Source: Caecitellus pseudoparvulus
Taxonomy: Eukaryota; Protista; Bigyra: Bicosoecida
Direction of reading: 5' to 3'
Length of the DNA: 9,689 nucleotides
Assembly: GCA_965644315.1 (NCBI GenBank)
Contig: CBFFRQ010000209.1
Coordinates: forward strand, 1-9,689
Part shown: positions 3 through 9,064 of the stretch, one piece after another
Position numbering within the stretch: position 1 is the first letter of the stretch
Layout: each line of letters opens with the position of its first letter
Position numbers and translations under genes: made by a program
Notes under the pieces: generated by a model
Told to the model about the DNA's origin: nothing
The model's input: the letters and a program-made list of their open reading frames with translations, nothing else
Databases searched by the model: none

Positions 3-925
3 CTGAGAGGGCATCGACAAGTGAATGTTCATGCTGGGTCTGAGGGTATCCCTGAGTATGGCTTTCGAATCGCTTGTACGATGGGGCACACCGATGTAGT
101 GAGAGAGCTGCTGGCACTGAGTGGTGCTCGGGAAGTGGACGTACATGCTGGGCCTGAGGGGCAGCCTGAGTATTGCTTCCGGCTTGCCTGTATGCATGGT
201 ATGTTGGATGTGGTGCGCGAGCTGCTGGCGTTGACGGGTGACCGTGCGGTGGATGTGCATGCTGGTTCTCAGGGTGTTCCTGAAACTGCCTTCCGGGTTG
301 CCTGTGCGAAAGGTCACATTGATGTTGTGCGGGAGCTGCTGGCTTTGACCGGGCATCGAGAGGTGGATGTGCATGCTGGAGCTGGGGGCGTGCCTGAGGC
401 TGGCTTCTGGCTTGCCTGTGAGAATGGTCACTTGGATGTAGTGCGCGAGTTGCTGTCGTTGAGTGGGCATCGCGAAGTGGACGTGCATGTGGGGCCTGAG
501 GAAGGAGCTGAGTATGGCTTCTGGCTCGCCTGTGAGAATGGACATGTCGATGTGGTGCGTGAGCTGTTGGCGCTGACCGAGTATCGTGCCGTTGACGTGC
601 ACGCTCGCCAGGAGGCTTGCCTCCAGGCTGCTTGTGCGACTGGGCACCTTGAGGTTGTGCGTGAGCTACTGGCTCTGACGGGTGACCGCGAGGTGGATGT
701 GCATGCTGGACCTGATGGCAATCCTGAGGGTGGCTTCCAGCTCGCCTGTGGGAACGGACATCTAGACGTGGTGCGGGAGCTGCTGGCGTTGAGCGGGCAT
801 CGTGAGGTAGATGTGCATGCTGGGGCTGAGGGCGGGCCTGAGCATGGCTTCGGACTTGCCTGTGCGAGGGGGCACTTGGATGTAGTGCGCGAGCTGTTGG
901 CGTTGAGCGGGCATCGTGAGGTGGA
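3..925 (+). pseudogene. Ankyrin-like repeat gene A, 5' part (open from the window edge; interrupted by a mobile element after nt 925)
   Basis: The frame is open from nt 3 (LRGHRQVNVHAG...). It has eight repeats of DVHAGxxGxPExGFxLACxxGHxDVVRELLALxGxRxV (38 aa/114 nt; one is 34 aa). The ACxxGHxDVVxxLL...DV core matches the ankyrin consensus. The repeat pattern breaks abruptly after GAG GTG GA at 925. Confidence 0.9.
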
Positions 926-934
926 AAATACTCT

Positions 935-970
935 TGGCCCTGCGGGCCATGCCTGCGGCATGCGAGACGC
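935..970 (-). other. Terminal hairpin cluster of the outer element
   Basis: TGGCCC-TGC-GGGCCA (935-949), CATGCC-TGC-GGCATG (948-962) and a weak GCG-AGA-CGC (962-970). On the minus strand the first two loops read c-GCA-g. Confidence 0.8.
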
Positions 971-980
971 TGTCTACCGT
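968..980. repeat. Subterminal inverted repeat of the outer element (42 nt inside the hairpin-bearing end)
   Basis: CGCTGTCTACCGT pairs 13/13 with the reconstructed 3084-3091 plus 5787-5791. Confidence 0.9.
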
Positions 981-3100
981 CCCCATGCCCTGCACTGTGC
1001 CCTGGCTGTGGCCTTGGGCCTCCGGCCGGCCAACCTGCCCCACATGGACTTCCAGCCAAGGCGACCTGTGGACGCCCATCTGCAATGCATTGCCAGCGCT
1101 CCACACAGGGACTTCGCATTCACGCTCTCTGTGCCGCACTGGGCGCTGCGGCAACGGGCATCGCTGATGTGCCCGTCCAGGCCAGCGGACATGATTGGAA
1201 CCTTCCACAGCAAGCACCACACCAGCCCTCCGCGCAGTACCTCGGCCACCACAAGCCCATGCACGACATGCACTGCCCTTCCTGTGTGCTGAAGCATCGT
1301 GCACGTCTTGCCTGAGGCGCGCCTGCCTCGGCACTGCCCTGGTCGCGCGCAGTGGAAGGTGCGACACCAAGTGCGAGTGATGCGGCCACAAGCGCCAAGC
1401 CCTACGCGTGTGGCCTCAGCAGCTGCGACCGCCACATGGCGCATCGGACATGCACGGGAACTGCCAACTGCAGGCATGGGGCCCTGGGACCGCCACAGCG
1501 ATCATGCTGGGCACGGCGCCCACTTTGGCTTGGCCATGGCCCGGAGAGCCGCTGCGCCAATCACGCCGTAGGCAGGCCCACACCCGGACATTCTGCCACG
1601 TGTGCACTGCCTGGCCCATGCAACAGTGTCTGTGCACAGGGTGTAGCAGCCCAGCCCTATGTCACGCTGCACCAGCGTCACAAGTACTCAGCCCGACGCC
1701 CGTTTGTATGATGAAGGTCCTTGGCGCAGTGTCGGTGGAGGTCGGGGACGGCAGTGCCAGCACGCGTGCGCGCACACAAGAGTGCACGGGTGTGGCACGG
1801 AGCAGCAGTATGGCGAGGCAGCTGTGTGTACTTGCTGCACGTGGCTTTGGTGTGGCTCGTTCCAACTTCGTTGGCTTCGGCCAGCTGCGGATACGGGCAC
1901 CCTGGTGCTCTTGCTGGCGGTATGAGCAGCCGTGTCACGCCCTCTGCACATGCCTAGGCCCAGCATGAACCGTAGTGCATGTTCTACGACGGCTGGGCTG
2001 CCGTTCTGGAGCAAGTGCACTGCCGCCGGCCGCGGCCGCCGCGCGCTGCTGCTGGCGCAGCGCGGCGCGGCGCGGCGGCGAGACCGGCGGCGGCAACTCG
2101 GACAACTGCACGATCTGCAACGCATACAGCCTAGGCACATGCACTGGATGAGTCTGCGGCCCAGCATGTAGCCCCAGGTGGGCGGCCTACCGCTGCCGAG
2201 CAAGCACTTGCCTGTCCAGCAAGGTCTCGCCCTGGACCGGTCAGCACTACCTGCACCACAAATCCCTTCGCCTTGGCACCGGGGCAGGCAACTGACTTGC
2301 ATATGGCTCTGTAGCACAAGCCACTGGAGCTCTCCCGCTTACACAAGCACGAAGCTGCTCTGCGAGACGCCAGCCAGGCACCAGCCAGCGCAAGGCTCAG
2401 CACTGCGGCACTTCCCTGAGCCACGGCAAGCGATTCTGCGCCAAGCAGAGCAAACCTCCGTGCCATATGCCGTACCGATGCCCTGACACACTTTGCCAGT
2501 GCGCTAGGGTGCTCAGGTGGCTTGGCACAGGCCTGCCGAGGAAGGCGCCCAGCCAACACGCCTATGCAGCAAAACCTTCACAGGCCAACGGCACAGAACT
2601 GGCCGCTGCGCAGCAGGCAGTAGGCTAAGCATGTAGTATTGTGTCCATAGGCCAGGCGCGTGTCGTTTGCAATGCCGTTGGTGCAAAGCCCTGCCCTGTG
2701 GACTTGCGCGTGGAAGGGGCACAATTTTGCACCGAAAACAAGTGTGCGCACGCCCTGCCGCGCAGCACACGCGCCCCGCTCTGCAAGCACCATTGCATTG
2801 TATGTTCCCTTTGTAGGTACTTGTGTCGGGCACCCCGGAAGGTGAGCGCGTGTCCTGGTGCGTGTGATTGAAAACTCGTGGGATAGTCAATTTCCGGACT
2901 GATTTTCGCGCCCTACACCTGGAATATGCACTGCACGCACTGCAAAACACGTGCAAATACCATTTTGCATATGTACGCAGGTGGAGGATACAATGGCATG
3001 AGCGTGGGCCTTCCAGGGAACTCCAAACGACCATGTGGACTTCGTGCGTGAGCGGCCCCCTTCCCCCACACCCCCTGAACCTAACGGTAGAAAATACTCT

Positions 3101-3136
3101 TGGCCCTCCGGGCCATGCCTGCGGCATGCGAGACGC
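3101..3136 (-). other. Terminal hairpin cluster of the inner element
   Basis: TGGCCC-TCC-GGGCCA, CATGCC-TGC-GGCATG and GCG-AGA-CGC. The stems are identical to the outer copy and the single change is the central loop base. Confidence 0.8.
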
Positions 3137-3147
3137 TATCTACCATC
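3135..3147. repeat. Subterminal inverted repeat of the inner element, hairpin-bearing end
   Basis: GCTATCTACCATC pairs 13/13 with 5771-5783. Confidence 0.9.
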
Positions 3148-4207
3148 CCCATGCTCTGCACTGTGCCCAGGCAGCGGCCTTGGGCCTCCGACCGGCCAAC
3201 CTGCCCCACATGGACTTCCAGCCAAGGCGACCTGTGGACGCCCATCTGCAATGCATTGCCAGCGCTCCACATAGGGACTTCGCATTCACGCTCTCTGTGC
3301 CGCACTGGGCGCTGCGGCAACGGGCATCGCTGATGTGCCCGTCCAGGCCAGCGGACATCAATGGAACCTTCCACTGCAAGCACCACACCAGCCCCTCGCG
3401 CAGTGCCTCAGCCACCACAGGCCCATGCACGACATGCACCGCCCTTCCTGTGTGCTGAAGCGTCGTGCACGTCTTGCCTGAGGCGCGCCTGCCTCGGCAC
3501 TGCCCTGGCCGCGCGCAGTGGAAGGCGCGACACCCAGTGCGAGTGATGCGGCCACAGGCGCCAAGCCCTACGCGAGTGGTCTTAGCAGCCGCGACCGCCA
3601 CATGGTACACCGGACATGCACGGATACTGCCAACTGCGGGCATGGGGCCCTGGGACCGCCACAGCGATCATGCTGGGCCCATGCCCTGCACTGTGCCCAG
3701 GCAGCGGCCTTGGGCCTCCGGCCGGCCAACCTGCCCCACATGGACTTCCAGCCAAGGCGACCTGTGGACGCCCATCTGCAATGCATTGCCAGCACTCCAC
3801 ACAGGGACTTCGCATTCACGCTCTCTGTGCCGCACTGGGCGCTGCGGCAACGGACATCGCTGATGTGCCTGCCCAGGCCAGCGGACATCAATGGAACCTT
3901 CCACTGCAAGCACCACACCAGCCCCTCGCGCAGTGCCTCAGCCACCACAGGCCCATGCACGACATGCACCGCCCTTCCTGTGTGCTGAAGCGTCGTGCAC
4001 GTCTTGCCTGAGGCGCGCCTGCCTCGGCACTGCCCTGGCCGCGCGCAGTGGAAGGTGCGACACCCAGTGCGAGTGATGCGGCCACAAGCGCCAAGCCCTA
4101 CGCGAGTGGCCTCAGCAGCCGCGACCGCCACATGGTACATCGGACATGCACGGATACTGCCAACTGCAGGCATGGAGCCCTGGGACCGCCACAGCGATCA
4201 TGCTGGG
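3148..4207. repeat. 530-bp direct tandem duplication inside the inner element (3148-3677 / 3678-4207)
   Basis: Manual alignment at offset 530 gave 14 mismatches and no indels. The junction is TGCTGGG|CCCATGCCC. The segment is present only once in the outer copy. Confidence 0.95.
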
Positions 4208-5770
4208 CACGGCACCCACTTTGGCTTGGCCATGGCCCGGAGAGCCGCTGCGCCAAGCACGCCGTAGGCAGGCCCACACCCGGACATTCTGCTGTGTGTG
4301 CACTGCCTGGCCCGTGTAACAGTTCCTGTGCACAGGGTGTAGCAGCCCAGCCCTATGTCACGCTGCACCAACGGCACAAGTGCTCAGCAGGACGCCAGAG
4401 TATGTGGTGGAAGGCCCGGTCAGAGAGTCGGTGGAGATCGGGGACGGCGGTGCCAGCAGGCGCCCGCGCACGCAGGAGGGTACAGTTGTGGCACAGTGTA
4501 GCAGTGTGGCGAAGCAGCTGTTTGTACCTGCTGCATATGGCTTTGGTGTGGCTCGTTCCAACTTCGTTGGCTTCGGCCAGCTGCGGATACGGGCACCCTG
4601 GTGCTCTTGCTGGCGGCATGAGCAGCCGTGTCACGCCCTCTGCACATGCCTAGGCCCAGCATGAACCGTAGTGCATGTTCTACGACGGCTGGGTTGCCGT
4701 TCTGGAGCAAGTGCACTGCCGCCGGTCTCGCCGCCGCGCGCTGCTGCTGGCGCAGCGCGCGCGCGGCGACGAGACCGGCGGCGGCAACTCGGACAACTGC
4801 ACGCTTTGCAATGAGTACAGTCCAGGCACATGTACTGGATGTGTCTGCGGCCCAGCAGGTAGCCTCAGCTGGGCGGCCTCCCGCTGCCGAGCAAGCACTT
4901 GCCCGTCAAGCAAGGCCTCGCCCTGGACCGGTCAGCACTACCTGCACCACAAATCCCTTCGCCTTGGCACTGGGGCAGGCAACTGACTTGCATGTGGCTC
5001 TGTGGCACGAGCCATTGGAGCTCTCCTGCTTACACAAGCACGGAGCTGCCCTGCGAGCCGCCAGCCATGCACCAGCCAGCGCCAGGCTCAGCACTGCGGC
5101 ACTTCCCTGAGCCACGGCAAGCGAAGCTGCGCCTAGCAGAGCAAACTTCCGTGCCATATGCCGTGCCGATGCCCTGACACAATTTGCCAGTGCGCCAGGG
5201 TGCTCAGGTGGCTTGGAACAGGCCTGCCGAGGACCGCGCCCAGCCAACACGCCAGTGCAGCAAAACCTGCACAGGCCAACGGCACAGAACTGGCCGCTGC
5301 GCAGCAGGCAGTAGGCTGAGCATGTAGTATTGTGTCCATAGGCCAGGCGCGTGTCGTTTGCAATGCCGTTGGTGCAAAGCCCTGCCCTGTGGACTTGCGC
5401 GTGGAAGTGGCACAGTTTGGCACCGAAAACAAGTGTGCGCACGCCCTGCCACGCAGCGCACGCGCCCCGCTCTGCAAGCACCATTGCATTGTATGTGCCT
5501 TTTGTAGGTCCTTGTGTGGGGCACCCCGGAAGGTGCGCGCGTGTCCTGGTGCGTGAGATCGCAAACTCGTGAAATTTCAATTTCCGGACTGGTTAATGCG
5601 CCCTGCACCTGGAATATGCAGTGCACGCACTGCAAAACACGTGCAAATACCATGTTGCATATGTACGCAGGTAGTGGATGCAATTGCGTGGCCATGGGCC
5701 TTCTAGGGGCTTAGTTGGACTTCTTGCGTGAGTGACCACTGGTACTTCCCCTCCCACACCCTCCGACCTT

Positions 5771-5783
5771 GATGGTAGATAGC
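5771..5783. repeat. Subterminal inverted repeat of the inner element, 3 nt from the opposite terminus
   Basis: GATGGTAGATAGC is followed by TAA, then by CAGCGAA, the remainder of the outer element. Confidence 0.9.
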
Positions 5784-5793
5784 TAACAGCGAA

Positions 5794-6559
5794 TGTGCAT
5801 GCTGGAGCTGGGGGCGGGCCTGAGGGTGGCTTTCGGTTGGCCTGTGGGAACGGACATCTAGACGTGGTGCGGGAGCTGCTGGCGTTGAGCGGGCATCGCG
5901 AGGTAGATGTGCATGCTGGGGCTGAGGGCGGGCCTGAGCATGGCTTCCAGCTCGCCTGTGGGAACGGACATCTAGACGTGGTGCGGGAGCTGCTGGCGTT
6001 GAGCGGGCATCGTGAGGTAGATGTGCATGCTGGGGCTGAGGGCGGGCCTGAGCATGGCTTTCGGTTGGCCTGTGCGAAAGGTCACATTGACGTGGTGCGG
6101 GCGCTGCTGGCGTTGAGCGGGCATCGCGAGGTTGATGTGCATGCTGGGGCTGAGGGCGGGCCTGAGCATGGCTTTCGGTTGGCCTGTGATAAAGGGCATT
6201 TGGATGTGGTGCTTGAGCTGCTGGCTCTGACTGGGCATCGCGAGGTAGATGTGCATGCTGGGGACCTGTATGGGGCTGAGTCTGGCTTCTTTCGAGCTTG
6301 CCAACACGGAAATGCCGATGTGGTGCGAGAGCTGCTAGGCCTCACCGGCCACCGAGCCACTCCCCTCGAAGCACGCCTTGCCGCGGGAGAGGCAGCTGTG
6401 CAGCCAGGCAAGGATGCTGTGTGGGCTGGCACAAGCATTCGACGGGGTCGCAAGGCTGTGGTGCTGCTGCGGAGCGCAAGGAGAGCAGGGAAGCGCCAGC
6501 GACAACCACCTGGCTCGGCCGTGGTGTCTCCAGCAGGCAAGACTGCACGCTCTGAATGA
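5794..6559 (+). pseudogene. Ankyrin-like repeat gene A, 3' part (five repeats plus basic C-terminal tail, TGA at 6557-6559)
   Basis: Joining 925 to 5794 restores GAG GTG GA|T GTG CAT GCT (EVDVHA) in frame, with no base gained or lost relative to the repeat consensus. 731-850 is identical to 5941-6060, linking the two halves. The rejoined frame is 562 aa within the window. Confidence 0.9.
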
Positions 6560-6696: not shown

Positions 6697-7034
6697 GGGC
6701 ATGTTGGATTGCTGCGTGGGCTATTGGCGTTGGAGGGCGAGCTTTTTGTGAACATACATGGGATCGATAAGAGTGGGCCTGAGTATGCCTTCCGACTTTC
6801 CTGCCAGAACGGACACATGGACGTAGTGCGCGAGTTGCTGGCTCTCACAGGTCATCGAGCCATCGCCCGCCAGACGCAGATCAAGGGCGGAGAAATAGTT
6901 GTACAGGCGGCCAAGGATGTTTTTGGCGCGGCACTAGCACTCGGCAGGGTCGAGGCACAATGGTGCTCCTATGTGTGAGCCGGACGTTGCCAAGATGGCA
7001 TACTATGGTGGACCGGCCTTCGCTGTGGGTGTAG
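6697..7034 (+). pseudogene. Ankyrin-like gene B relic (about 1.5 repeats plus C-terminal motif, frameshifted)
   Basis: GHVGLLRGLLALEGELFVNIH...GPEYAFRLSCQNGHMDVVRELLALTGHRAI is paralogous to gene C. After KDV, a T5 run (6920-6924) shifts the frame. The other frame continues WRGTSTRQGRGTMVLLCVSR to TAG at 7032-7034, homologous to the tails of genes A and C. The 5' boundary is uncertain. Confidence 0.75.
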
Positions 7035-7720: not shown

Positions 7721-9064
7721 ATGGCCGGTGTGAGCAGTGGGGAGGGTATATCAGCGCGGTGGCAAGCTGCATGTACGAGTAAACAACTTGATGTACTTCT
7801 TCGTATGCTGCGAGGGGGTGGAGATGGTGCGAGCGCGGATTTGGGGGGCTTGTCACGCGCACACACAACGGCTGGCTTTGTGGTCGCTTGCAAGGCGGGG
7901 CATGTTGGGTTGCTGCGTGCGCTGCTGAAGTTGGAGGGTGAGCTTGCTGTGGATGTGCATGCTGCACCCGTGGGTGATTCAGAGTATGGCTTCCAGTGGG
8001 CATGTCGCAATGGGCATGTTGGTGTCGTACGGGAGTTACTGTCTCTCAGCGGGGACAGAGAAGTGGACGTGCATGTCGGACCAGAGGGCAGGCCTGAGTT
8101 TGGTTTTCGGGCAGCATGCTGCAATGGCCACGTGGGTGTGGTGCGTGAGCTCCTGGCTTTGACTGGCGAGCGATCTGTGGATGTGCACGCGAAAGTCTGG
8201 GGTGTGCCCGAAGCTGGATTCCGAGTTGCGTGTGAGAACGGGCATGTGGATGTGGTGCGAGAGCTGTTGGATCTCACTGGCGATCGTGAGGTGGACGTGC
8301 ATACACGGGACCGAGCAGGGCCTGAGGCTGGCTTCCGACTTGCCTGCCAGAACGGGCATGTGTGTGTTGTGCGCGAGTTGCTAGCGTTGACTGGGCACCG
8401 TGCCATTCATCGAGAGGGGCCTGAGGTTGGATTCCCACTAGCCTGTCAGAATGGGCATGTGTGTGTTGTGCGTGAGCTGCTGGCTTTGACTGGGCACCGT
8501 GCCATCTACTGGAGGGGAACTCTGGTTGGATTCCGACTAGCCTGCGAGAATGGGCATGCTGATACTGTGCGTGAGCTGTTGCCACTGTCCGGTGATCGTG
8601 CAGTTGATCAGAATGGGCTTGACAGTGGTTTCCGGGCTGCCTGTCAACACGGGCACGTGGAGCTGGTGCAAGAGCTGCTGGCCTTGGCTGATGGCAGGTC
8701 GGTGGATGTACATGCAAAGGACAGGGCGGGGTTCGAAGCTGGGTTCCGATGGGCATGTCGAAATGGCCACGCGAACGTGGTGCGCGTATTGCTGGCCTTG
8801 ACCGGGGATCGTGCCGTTGACGTGCACGCTGGGCTTGAGGGCAAGCCTGACTATGCATGGCGGTGGGCATGTCACAACGGGCATCTGGAAGTGGTGCGTG
8901 AGCTGATGCATTTGACCGGACATCGAGCCGTCCCGCGAGAGTTCTTGCGAGCTGATCGTGAAATTGTGCGGTCACTGAAGAATGCCATCTGGGTCGGCAC
9001 CAACTCTCTGCATGGCCGGCGCGCTATGGTGCTGCTGCGGGTCGCTCAGAGAAAGCAAGCATAG
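7721..9064 (+). CDS. Ankyrin-like repeat protein, gene C (447 aa, intact)
   Basis: The ATG is in a Kozak-like context (GCCACGCCATGG). Two degenerate N-terminal repeats are followed by nine repeats (six of 38 aa, three of 33 aa) and the tail KNAIWVGTNSLHGRRAMVLLRVAQRKQA-TAG. The upstream 250 codons of the 697-aa ORF call are not repeat-like and are largely antisense to the 7068-7589 frame. Confidence 0.88.
   Translation: MAGVSSGEGISARWQAACTSKQLDVLLRMLRGGGDGASADLGGLSRAHTTAGFVVACKAGHVGLLRALLKLEGELAVDVHAAPVGDSEYGFQWACRNGHVGVVRELLSLSGDREVDVHVGPEGRPEFGFRAACCNGHVGVVRELLALTGERSVDVHAKVWGVPEAGFRVACENGHVDVVRELLDLTGDREVDVHTRDRAGPEAGFRLACQNGHVCVVRELLALTGHRAIHREGPEVGFPLACQNGHVCVVRELLALTGHRAIYWRGTLVGFRLACENGHADTVRELLPLSGDRAVDQNGLDSGFRAACQHGHVELVQELLALADGRSVDVHAKDRAGFEAGFRWACRNGHANVVRVLLALTGDRAVDVHAGLEGKPDYAWRWACHNGHLEVVRELMHLTGHRAVPREFLRADREIVRSLKNAIWVGTNSLHGRRAMVLLRVAQRKQA

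Follow-up and report, generated by a model that had tools for sequence, protein, structure and literature searches.

How did a mobile element come to split an ankyrin repeat gene of the bicosoecid protist Caecitellus pseudoparvulus at one particular codon, and what kind of element is it? The gene lies in the window analyzed here, the entire 9.7-kb contig C209 (9,689 nucleotides; GenBank CBFFRQ010000209.1) of a 30.6-Mb, GC-rich (62-70% GC) genome assembly (GCA_965644315.1), and its two halves are separated by an insert of 4,868 bp. The insert probably represents two nested copies of a Helitron2/HINE-like element, designated F1, that integrates site-specifically in ankyrin repeats. A second family with related ends, designated F2, uses another fixed position in the same repeat.

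The insert and its two copies

The interrupted open reading frame (ORF) is built of 114-bp (38-aa) ankyrin-type repeats (Pfam Ank_2, Ank, Ank_3) and is divided over positions 21-925 and 5794-6559. The repeat units are 65-88% alike, some of them near-identical. Host sequence up to 925 reads ...CGTGAGGTGGA and the element starts at 926 with AAATACTCTT, while the host repeat restarts with TGTGCATGCTGG at 5794; GAGGT(G/A)GATGTGCATGCTGG is the sequence of units without an insertion. Alignment of the two halves of the insert revealed two copies of one element, ~92% alike, the second of which carries a 530-bp internal duplication. After the motif GGTAGA at 3086-3091, AAATACTCTT occurs again at 3092, and the copy that begins there ends ...GGTAGATAGCTAA / GATGGTAGATAGCTAA at 5786. 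The heptamer CAGCGAA (5787-5793) and then the host follow.

The ends of the other copies fix how these pieces have to be read. Variant-1 copies in the genome (contigs C68, C69 and C151) always end ...ACGGTAGACAGCGAA (...CTAACGGTAGACAGCGAA), and variant-2 copies (C23 and contigs of the sequencing runs X5, X6 and X11, see below) always end ...GATGGTAGATAGCTAA (...TTGATGGTAGATAGCTAA). The variant-2 end at 5786 is matched by the copies of C23 and of the X5, X6 and X11 contigs, which run on into TGTGCAC..., and all variant-1 copies end GGTAGACAGCGAA, matching the completion of the outer copy by CAGCGAA. A complete variant-2 copy (3092-5786) is therefore nested in a variant-1 copy (926-3091 plus 5787-5793), and this reading is proven by the other genomic copies. 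The outer copy is ~92% identical to those on C68, C69 and C151 (the latter denoted C151_A). A reading made from the letters of the window only (the sequence-only reading) had placed the outer copy at GGTGGA^T (920-925/5794) and the inner copy nested at GGTAGA^C (3086-3091/5787), where ^ marks the junction; both sites were read directly and agree with the other copies.

No duplicated bases are present at the junctions, as that reading had also stated. The caveat is one A, or T in the complementary strand, that can be assigned to host or element, and a target duplication of 1 nt may be compatible with this ambiguous A at every junction. The numbers of A agree in all cases, being 4 + 2 at host junctions, 1 in empty sites and 5 at a head-to-tail junction on C151.

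Insertion sites and length of the target

The assembly harbours seven F1 copies at five host loci, 90-99.5% identical. Those on C68, C69 and C151_A are mutually 98.6-99.5% identical and are the youngest; the remaining copies show 90-94%. An apparent eighth copy on C44 was rejected, as it is a chance 13-mer with no BLAST similarity. All five host loci are ankyrin repeats, with a single orientation in which the transposon strand is antisense to the gene, and four of the five insertions lie at one codon position, (N)GTGGA^YGTGCA (Val-Asp^Val-His) (Table 1).

Further insertions were found in other strains, represented by Logan contigs of four further runs, all marine. The variant-2 ends continue there into TGTGCACGCAAGG (X5), TGTGCACACAGCGG (X6) and TGTGCACGCGGCGG (X11), and a 5' junction in run X6 reads ACTGGGGCGCGGGAA^GTGGAAAATACTC. 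These contigs add at least three ankyrin-repeat F1 sites. Two of the sites filled in other strains are empty in the assembly, on C202 (...ACTGGGGCGCGGGAAGTGGATGTGCACGCGGCAGATG...) and on C136, C147 and C193 (...CGCGGGCCGTGGATGTGCACGCAAGGGACTGG...), and reconstructed and real empty sites alike contain one T, in GTGGA^TGTGCA. From these filled and empty pairs it is clear that F1 moved after the strains diverged.

The (N)GTGGA^ seen at 920-925 of the window recurs on C69, C68 and C151 and in run X6, and YGTGCA follows in seven of the eight host insertions (assembly plus other-strain contigs). The single orientation and shared motif noted from the two window sites thus extend to six further independent junctions showing (N)GTGGA^. 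The first base of the motif can be G, A or C, and (N)GTRGA^ describes it better than GGTRGA^.

How much sequence is read was approached by counting. GGTGGA occurs 33,796 times in the genome, with no excess over a reversed control; GTGGAYGTGCA occurs 1,452 times (reversed control, 146), ~90% of these in ankyrin repeats; and GAGGTGGAYGTGCA occurs 467 times (reversed control, 6). A 5- or 6-mer alone would put the host insertions almost all outside ankyrin repeats, and none is found there, so that a 6-mer is insufficient. The ~11-nt site does account for the confinement because ~90% of its occurrences are in these repeats. The data suggest that the effective target of F1 is ~11 nt long, which is enough to explain why insertions are confined to ankyrin repeats. 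The look-alike GTGGAYGTGGT, with only 231 sites (expected share 14%), is too rare to discriminate. Of the earlier proposal, the sequence-specific targeting stood, with five of five host loci in ankyrin repeats and at least three more in other strains, and the target length of ~6 nt had to be given up in view of the abundance of GGTGGA. Integration of F1 that is specific for sequence, site and orientation is strongly supported.

Table 1 Features of the window and of F1 and F2 insertion sites elsewhere in the assembly (positions without a contig name are those of the window)
Feature	Position	Strand	Remarks
Upstream host ankyrin ORF part	21-925	+	Runs on into element, stop at 1292; ORF list, Pfam, 114-bp repeat family
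Target, upstream half GGTGGA	920-925	+	Cut follows 925, or 924 because of the ambiguous A
Outer F1 copy (variant 1), major part	926-3091	-	Whole copy minus first 7 nt (transposon strand); one 530-bp unit
Outer copy, 3' terminus (right terminal sequence, RTS)	926-960	-	Tail AAGAGTATTT(T) at 926-934 on +, then two GC hairpins
Outer copy, 3' arm of inverted repeat, 13 nt	968-980	-	ACGGTAGACAGCG on transposon strand; 42 nt before 3' end at 926
Outer copy, other arm, first 8 nt (on +)	3084-3091	-	Holds GGTAGA 3086-3091, the inner-copy target; continues at 5787-5791
Inner F1 copy (variant 2), complete	3092-5786	-	Inserted at GGTAGA^CAGCGAA of outer copy, orientation identical
Inner copy, inverted-repeat arm	3135-3147	-	GCTATCTACCATC; perfectly complementary to 5771-5783
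Internal 530-bp unit, two in inner copy	3148-4207 (3148-3677, 3678-4207)	-	Repeat analysis
Inner copy, terminal-side arm	5771-5783	-	GATGGTAGATAGC; begins 3 nt from element end 5786 under the window boundary assignment
Outer copy, last 7 nt (on +)	5787-5793	-	CAGCGAA, the first 7 nt TTCGCTG on transposon strand
Downstream host ankyrin ORF part	5794-6559	+	Begins with target downstream half TGTGCA
F1 junction, window		sense	GAGGTGGA^TGTGCAT
F1 junction, C69		sense	GAGGTGGA^TGTGCAA
F1 junction, C68		sense	GAGGTGGA^CGTGCAT
F1 junction, C151		sense	GCAGTGGA^TGTGCAT
F1 junction, C23		sense	GAGGTAAATA^ACATGCT; 2 nt downstream, host repeat 1 nt short
F2 copy	C68: ~668,930-671,130	-	Further copies on C157, C175 and C56

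The three ankyrin genes of the window have similar non-repeat tails (6410-6559, 6860-6978 and 8930-9064) reading ...A(V/I)W(A/V)GT...GR(K/R)A(V/M)VLLR.... Many ankyrin arrays of the assembly are found in the initial few tens of kb of their contigs (C7, C8, C11, C12, C13, C21, C22 and C25), which suggests a subtelomeric or assembly-breaking location of the family.

Insertions into occupied sites

Two of the seven insertions hit sites that were already occupied, whereas, given over 1,400 candidate sites, ~0.015 such coincidences would be expected. The inner copy of the window sits at ACGGTAGA^CAGCGAA, and the TGTGCAT half-site is retained at a distance of 7 nt. The other case is a perfect head-to-tail F1 dimer (C151:675-6054) with no host base between the copies: the young variant-1 copy A lies at GCAGTGGA^ and directly abuts the 3' end of an older copy, B. 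The arms of copy C151_B (675-3365) do not match, one being of variant 2 and the opposite one of variant 1, which marks the copy as a recombinant (chimera) that is probably immobile.

Both re-insertions have an intact GTRGA side but no adjacent YGTGCA side. Because only the GTRGA half is retained in both, GTRGA^ seems to be the half that fixes the position of the cut. The YGTGCA side, or a wider repeat context, is needed for the confinement of naive insertions to ankyrin repeats. The role of the other target half may be taken by a resident element end, which would be plausible if the transposase binds resident ends.

A sister family at another position of the repeat

F2 is a 2.2-kb element in which a Pfam scan of the longest ORFs revealed no protein domain. 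It starts 5'-TTCCTAA TCCCCGTCC TAGGGTGTGGGGG... and ends ...GGACGGGGA GTAGACCTCCCA TGCC-GAA-GGCA TA GGCC-GAA-GGCC GTTGGATTTT-3'; the inverted repeat (TCCCCGTCC) is 9 nt long, the two hairpins are of the form GCC-GAA-GGC and the tail reads CGTTGGATTTT. What aligns with the ends of F1 is TTC at the start, the block CCGT..TAGG..GTGTGGGGG, the repeat arm, both hairpins (TGCC-GNA-GGCA and the second one) and ATTTT at the end. Since both ends align, F1 and F2 are sister families. A search for further families via the shared 5'-end motif returned only the known F1 and F2 copies.

The F2 sites are again in ankyrin repeats, at another fixed position and in the orientation opposite to that of F1 (sense): ...CACATTGATGT(G/T)GT^GCG(C/A)GAGCTG (Val-Val^Arg-Glu-Leu). 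Five F2-type junctions, on C68, C157, C175, C56 (a 5'-truncated copy) and C202 (a different element), lie at GTKGT^GCGNGAGCT, one of them reading GCGTATACT (GCGTATACTG as right flank). The C56 copy (~430,594-432,330) lacks the first ~460 nt; its left junction is in another part of the ankyrin repeat, at a TTCTTCCG microhomology with host GGCTTCCG, and ~45 nt of host repeat are absent between the flanks. On C202 (~4250-4350) the element body is different and only the last ~70 nt (repeat arm, hairpins and tail) are common with F2, at the same ankyrin position; an empty F1 site lies ~40 nt downstream, which runs X6 and X11 show to be occupied in other strains. Since the fixed site of F2 in the repeat is not that of F1, targeting of multicopy ankyrin repeats is a property of this element group.

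Does the element find the target with its own ends?

The sequence-only reading had proposed that targeting is self-guided, the subterminal inverted repeat (subTIR) of F1, or a protein binding it, recognizing a target that resembles its core, much as IS200/IS605 elements use guides. The target flank TCCACC/TCCACT of F1 indeed resembles the repeat core TCTACC, and the inner copy is inserted exactly at the repeat core, in register. Moreover F1 and F2 are both non-coding and have homologous ends and different targets, so that the difference would be encoded in cis if one transposase moves both. F2 nevertheless speaks against the idea. It had been anticipated that a different subTIR core would bring a corresponding target, whereas the F2 target GTGGT^GCGMGAG has no counterpart to its own core TCCCCGTCC / GGACGGGGA. 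The best words shared by, or complementary between, ends and target are 5-7 nt long and at unrelated positions, and cross-controls of F1 ends against the F2 target gave equal results. In predicted folds the F1 repeat arm is not paired with the flank, and a 5-6-nt motif cannot account for the confinement to ankyrin repeats. Variants 1 and 2 of F1 differ only outside the core and have a common target, and thus do not discriminate.

Because F2 shows no correspondence, the resemblance of TCTACC to TCCACC in F1 stands alone and may be a coincidence; the nested insertion does show that the subTIR motif can be used as a target. Self-guided targeting through the subTIR is unlikely, and the comparison of the two families does not appear to support "target = own subTIR core" as a general rule. 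A guide encoded in cis elsewhere in the ends is conceivable, and it would be required if one enzyme moves both families. That a single Rep/helicase moves F1 and F2, with target choice encoded in the tail or hairpin region instead of the subTIR core, is likewise doubtful.

Architecture and class of F1

F1 is a family of 2.2-3.2 kb that appears to be non-coding, as a Pfam scan found no domain in any long ORF. On the minus strand of the window it reads 5'-TT CGCTGTCTACCGT TAGG ... ACGGTAGACAGCG TCTCGCA TGCC-GCA-GGCA TGGCCC-GNA-GGGCCA AGAGTATTT(T)-3'. The 13-nt inverted repeats are perfect, and their arms are separated from the 5' end by 2 nt and from the 3' end by 42-43 nt; in the outer copy the arm at 968-980 (CGCTGTCTACCGT) pairs with 3084-3091 plus 5787-5791. 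Relative to variant 1, variant 2 is changed at three arm positions on both arms (two G to A, one end shift by one base). The changes are compensatory (CGCTGTCTACCGT in variant 1, GCTATCTACCATC / GATGGTAGATAGC in variant 2) and complementarity is kept. The 13-mer at the 3' end is followed by two small GC hairpins and, on the transposon strand, the tail AGAGTATTTT. These hairpins, 10-35 nt from the 3' end, have 3-nt loops and read TGGCCC-TGC-GGGCCA (935-949) and TGCC-TGC-GGCA (950-960) on the plus strand (predicted fold of 926-990, minus strand, z = -3.9); the one at 935-949 is the robust feature of the predicted fold. T runs are present at both boundaries, and the 530-bp internal tandem unit occurs one to three times per genomic copy.

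Subterminal repeats, hairpins, T boundaries and tandem units of this kind have been published for Helitron2 (PMC3627910), and the same features, including adjoining copies, for Helentron-associated HINE/DINE-1 elements (PMC4067079). The Helitron2/Helentron HINEs and DINE-1 (HLE2) have subterminal inverted repeats of 12-15 nt, with spacings of 0-4 nt to the 5' end and 38-60 nt to the 3' end. Palindromes are found near the 3' end, the boundary T runs are part of the element, and some copies contain internal tandem repeats. These elements also share with F1 the lack of a target site duplication (TSD), compensatory changes in the repeats and directly adjoining copies. By its architecture F1 would be a non-autonomous Helitron2/HINE-like element, probably mobilized by a rolling-circle mechanism.

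A mechanism can be proposed on this basis. A Rep (HUH)/helicase supplied in trans would nick the ends of F1, and one F1 strand would be moved and joined into the nicked target without duplication. The integration point itself is the single T in ...TGCAC(A/G)-T-CCAC(C/T)... of the transposon strand, corresponding to (N)GTGGA^YGTGCA on the ankyrin sense strand. This target is available well over a thousand times, since each ankyrin repeat unit contains it once. It would be read either by the transposase or by the transposon DNA.

Several observations weigh against site-specific integration of a Helitron2/HINE-like element. The 5' hairpin described for Helitron2 (Bao & Jurka), in which the 5' repeat arm pairs with bases downstream of it, is not evident; only a 3-bp stem is predicted, and folding of the 5' 100 nt does not exceed that of shuffles (z = +1.1). 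The C23 site is 2 nt out of register, in a host repeat that is 1 nt short. Of only about nine known sites, one lies outside the single conserved repeat that holds the others, and the positions that are read are inseparable from repeat conservation. The target also differs from the T^T or T-rich site described for Helitron2/Helentron (PMC11417382), although the absence of a TSD agrees with that description. Finally, no Rep/helicase element with F1 ends was found in the 30.6-Mb assembly.

A long copy with the same ends that encodes a Rep(HUH)/PIF1, which the sequence-only reading had suggested looking for, was searched for in the assembly and not found. The sole RepHel encoded in the assembly, an open frame of 2,092 aa with PF14214, PIF1 and DUF6570, lies on C180 (14585-20860, minus strand). 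It belongs to a canonical Helitron (14485-~21000) with the 3' end GCCGC-GCTAG-GCGGC...CTAG^T at ~14485. This RepHel was rejected as partner of F1, because its element has the canonical hairpin-CTAG^T end and 20 kb of sequence show no similarity to F1. No further RepHel copies are present in the assembly, the other matches being PIF1-type helicases only. The C180 Helitron adjoins DNA of 19-27% GC (8-14 kb), and on its other flank a 103-bp satellite (70% GC), arrayed in at least 48 units, begins at ~23.1 kb. The autonomous partner may be absent from this strain or from the assembly. Exact-pattern scans of JGI metagenome contigs gave no match to the conserved F1 3' end, which says nothing on its absence.

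Other explanations of the insertions

F1 might belong to another or an undescribed mobile class that resembles Helitron2, such as a Crypton-like recombinase element, a Replitron or a site-specific retroelement. The lack of a RepHel partner would fit, and strict specificity for a long target is typical of recombinase- or R2-type elements, not of Helitrons. The junctions, however, share at most 1 nt, which leaves no crossover core; a core of 2 nt or more, as for a Crypton-like element, was excluded by the A counts at attL-like, attR-like, tandem and empty sites. Replitrons have short direct repeats at or near both termini (PMC10288648), whereas the F1 ends TTCGCTG... and ...GAGTATTT have no direct terminal repeat, which excludes a Replitron. 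There is also no poly(A) and no 5' truncation of F1, and both ends are precise in seven of seven copies. As the architecture of the ends fits the published Helitron2/HINE description point by point, another class is quite improbable.

The copies might also have been spread by ectopic gene conversion, or by other homology-driven copying, among paralogous ankyrin repeats. All sites are in one highly repeated family, some members of which are near-identical, with one orientation and no TSD. However, no more than 5-10 nt from the junctions the host flanks already diverge, and those of the youngest copies (C68, C69 and C151_A) do so on both sides, so that no co-conversion tract is present. The copies therefore represent separate insertions, not spread by long-tract conversion. 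The shifted register on C23 and the nested and head-to-tail insertions, which lack ankyrin homology on one side, point the same way, and the structured ends with their co-varying repeats point to an element that is recognized by an enzyme. Gene conversion is very unlikely to explain the distribution.

A spliceosomal intron or introner was rejected, as removal of GTGGAA...ACAG^ or ...ATAG^ gives a -1 frameshift (5 nt for 6). Among the sequencing runs searched, none of RNA contains the stretch.

Significance and comparison with known systems

The only target preferences published are AT for Helitron1 and TT or T-rich DNA for Helitron2/Helentron (PMC3627910, PMC11417382, PMC4067079). In the literature searched no Helitron-like family with a long specific target was found, which is not proof that none exists. 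As far as this literature shows, F1 and F2 would be a first clear case of strict sequence-specific integration in the Helitron-like class. Two families with two fixed sites of ~11 nt in one coding repeat form a natural system in which the reading of a long target, by a Rep/HUH transposase or by the transposon DNA, can be studied. They also bear on the persistence of transposons in a compact, gene-dense protist genome, where a large redundant gene family may serve as a safe landing site. If target choice were indeed encoded in cis, this would amount to eukaryotic, reprogrammable, DNA-guided HUH integration analogous to that of IS200/IS605.

F1 differs from Helitron2/HINE elements in that its target is a single T within a GC-rich coding-repeat sequence of ~11 nt, in the limitation of insertions to one gene family and in the two 3' hairpins; with no RepHel partner found in this genome, its class membership follows from DNA architecture alone. 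The C180 Helitron is a rolling-circle element of the same genome, but differs from F1 and F2 in its 3' end, a hairpin followed by CTAG^T, and in its AT-rich surroundings; its ends have no similarity to either family. With IS200/IS605 (IS608, ISDra2) F1 and F2 have in common strand- and orientation-specific insertion by a short sequence without TSD, subterminal hairpins and the use of a resident end as target. The IS200/IS605 enzymes, however, are prokaryotic Y1 enzymes and their 4-5-nt target is read by a guide beside the hairpin, whereas no guide-target correspondence was found for F1/F2. Strict targeting of multicopy sequences is unusual for the Helitron-like class and already known for Dada transposons (tRNA and snRNA genes) and for R1/R2 (rDNA), which likewise occupy a fixed position in a multicopy sequence and thereby limit harm to the host. 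Dada and R1/R2 employ other enzymes and target RNA genes, in contrast to F1, whose target is a coding tandem repeat in which an insertion breaks the reading frame.

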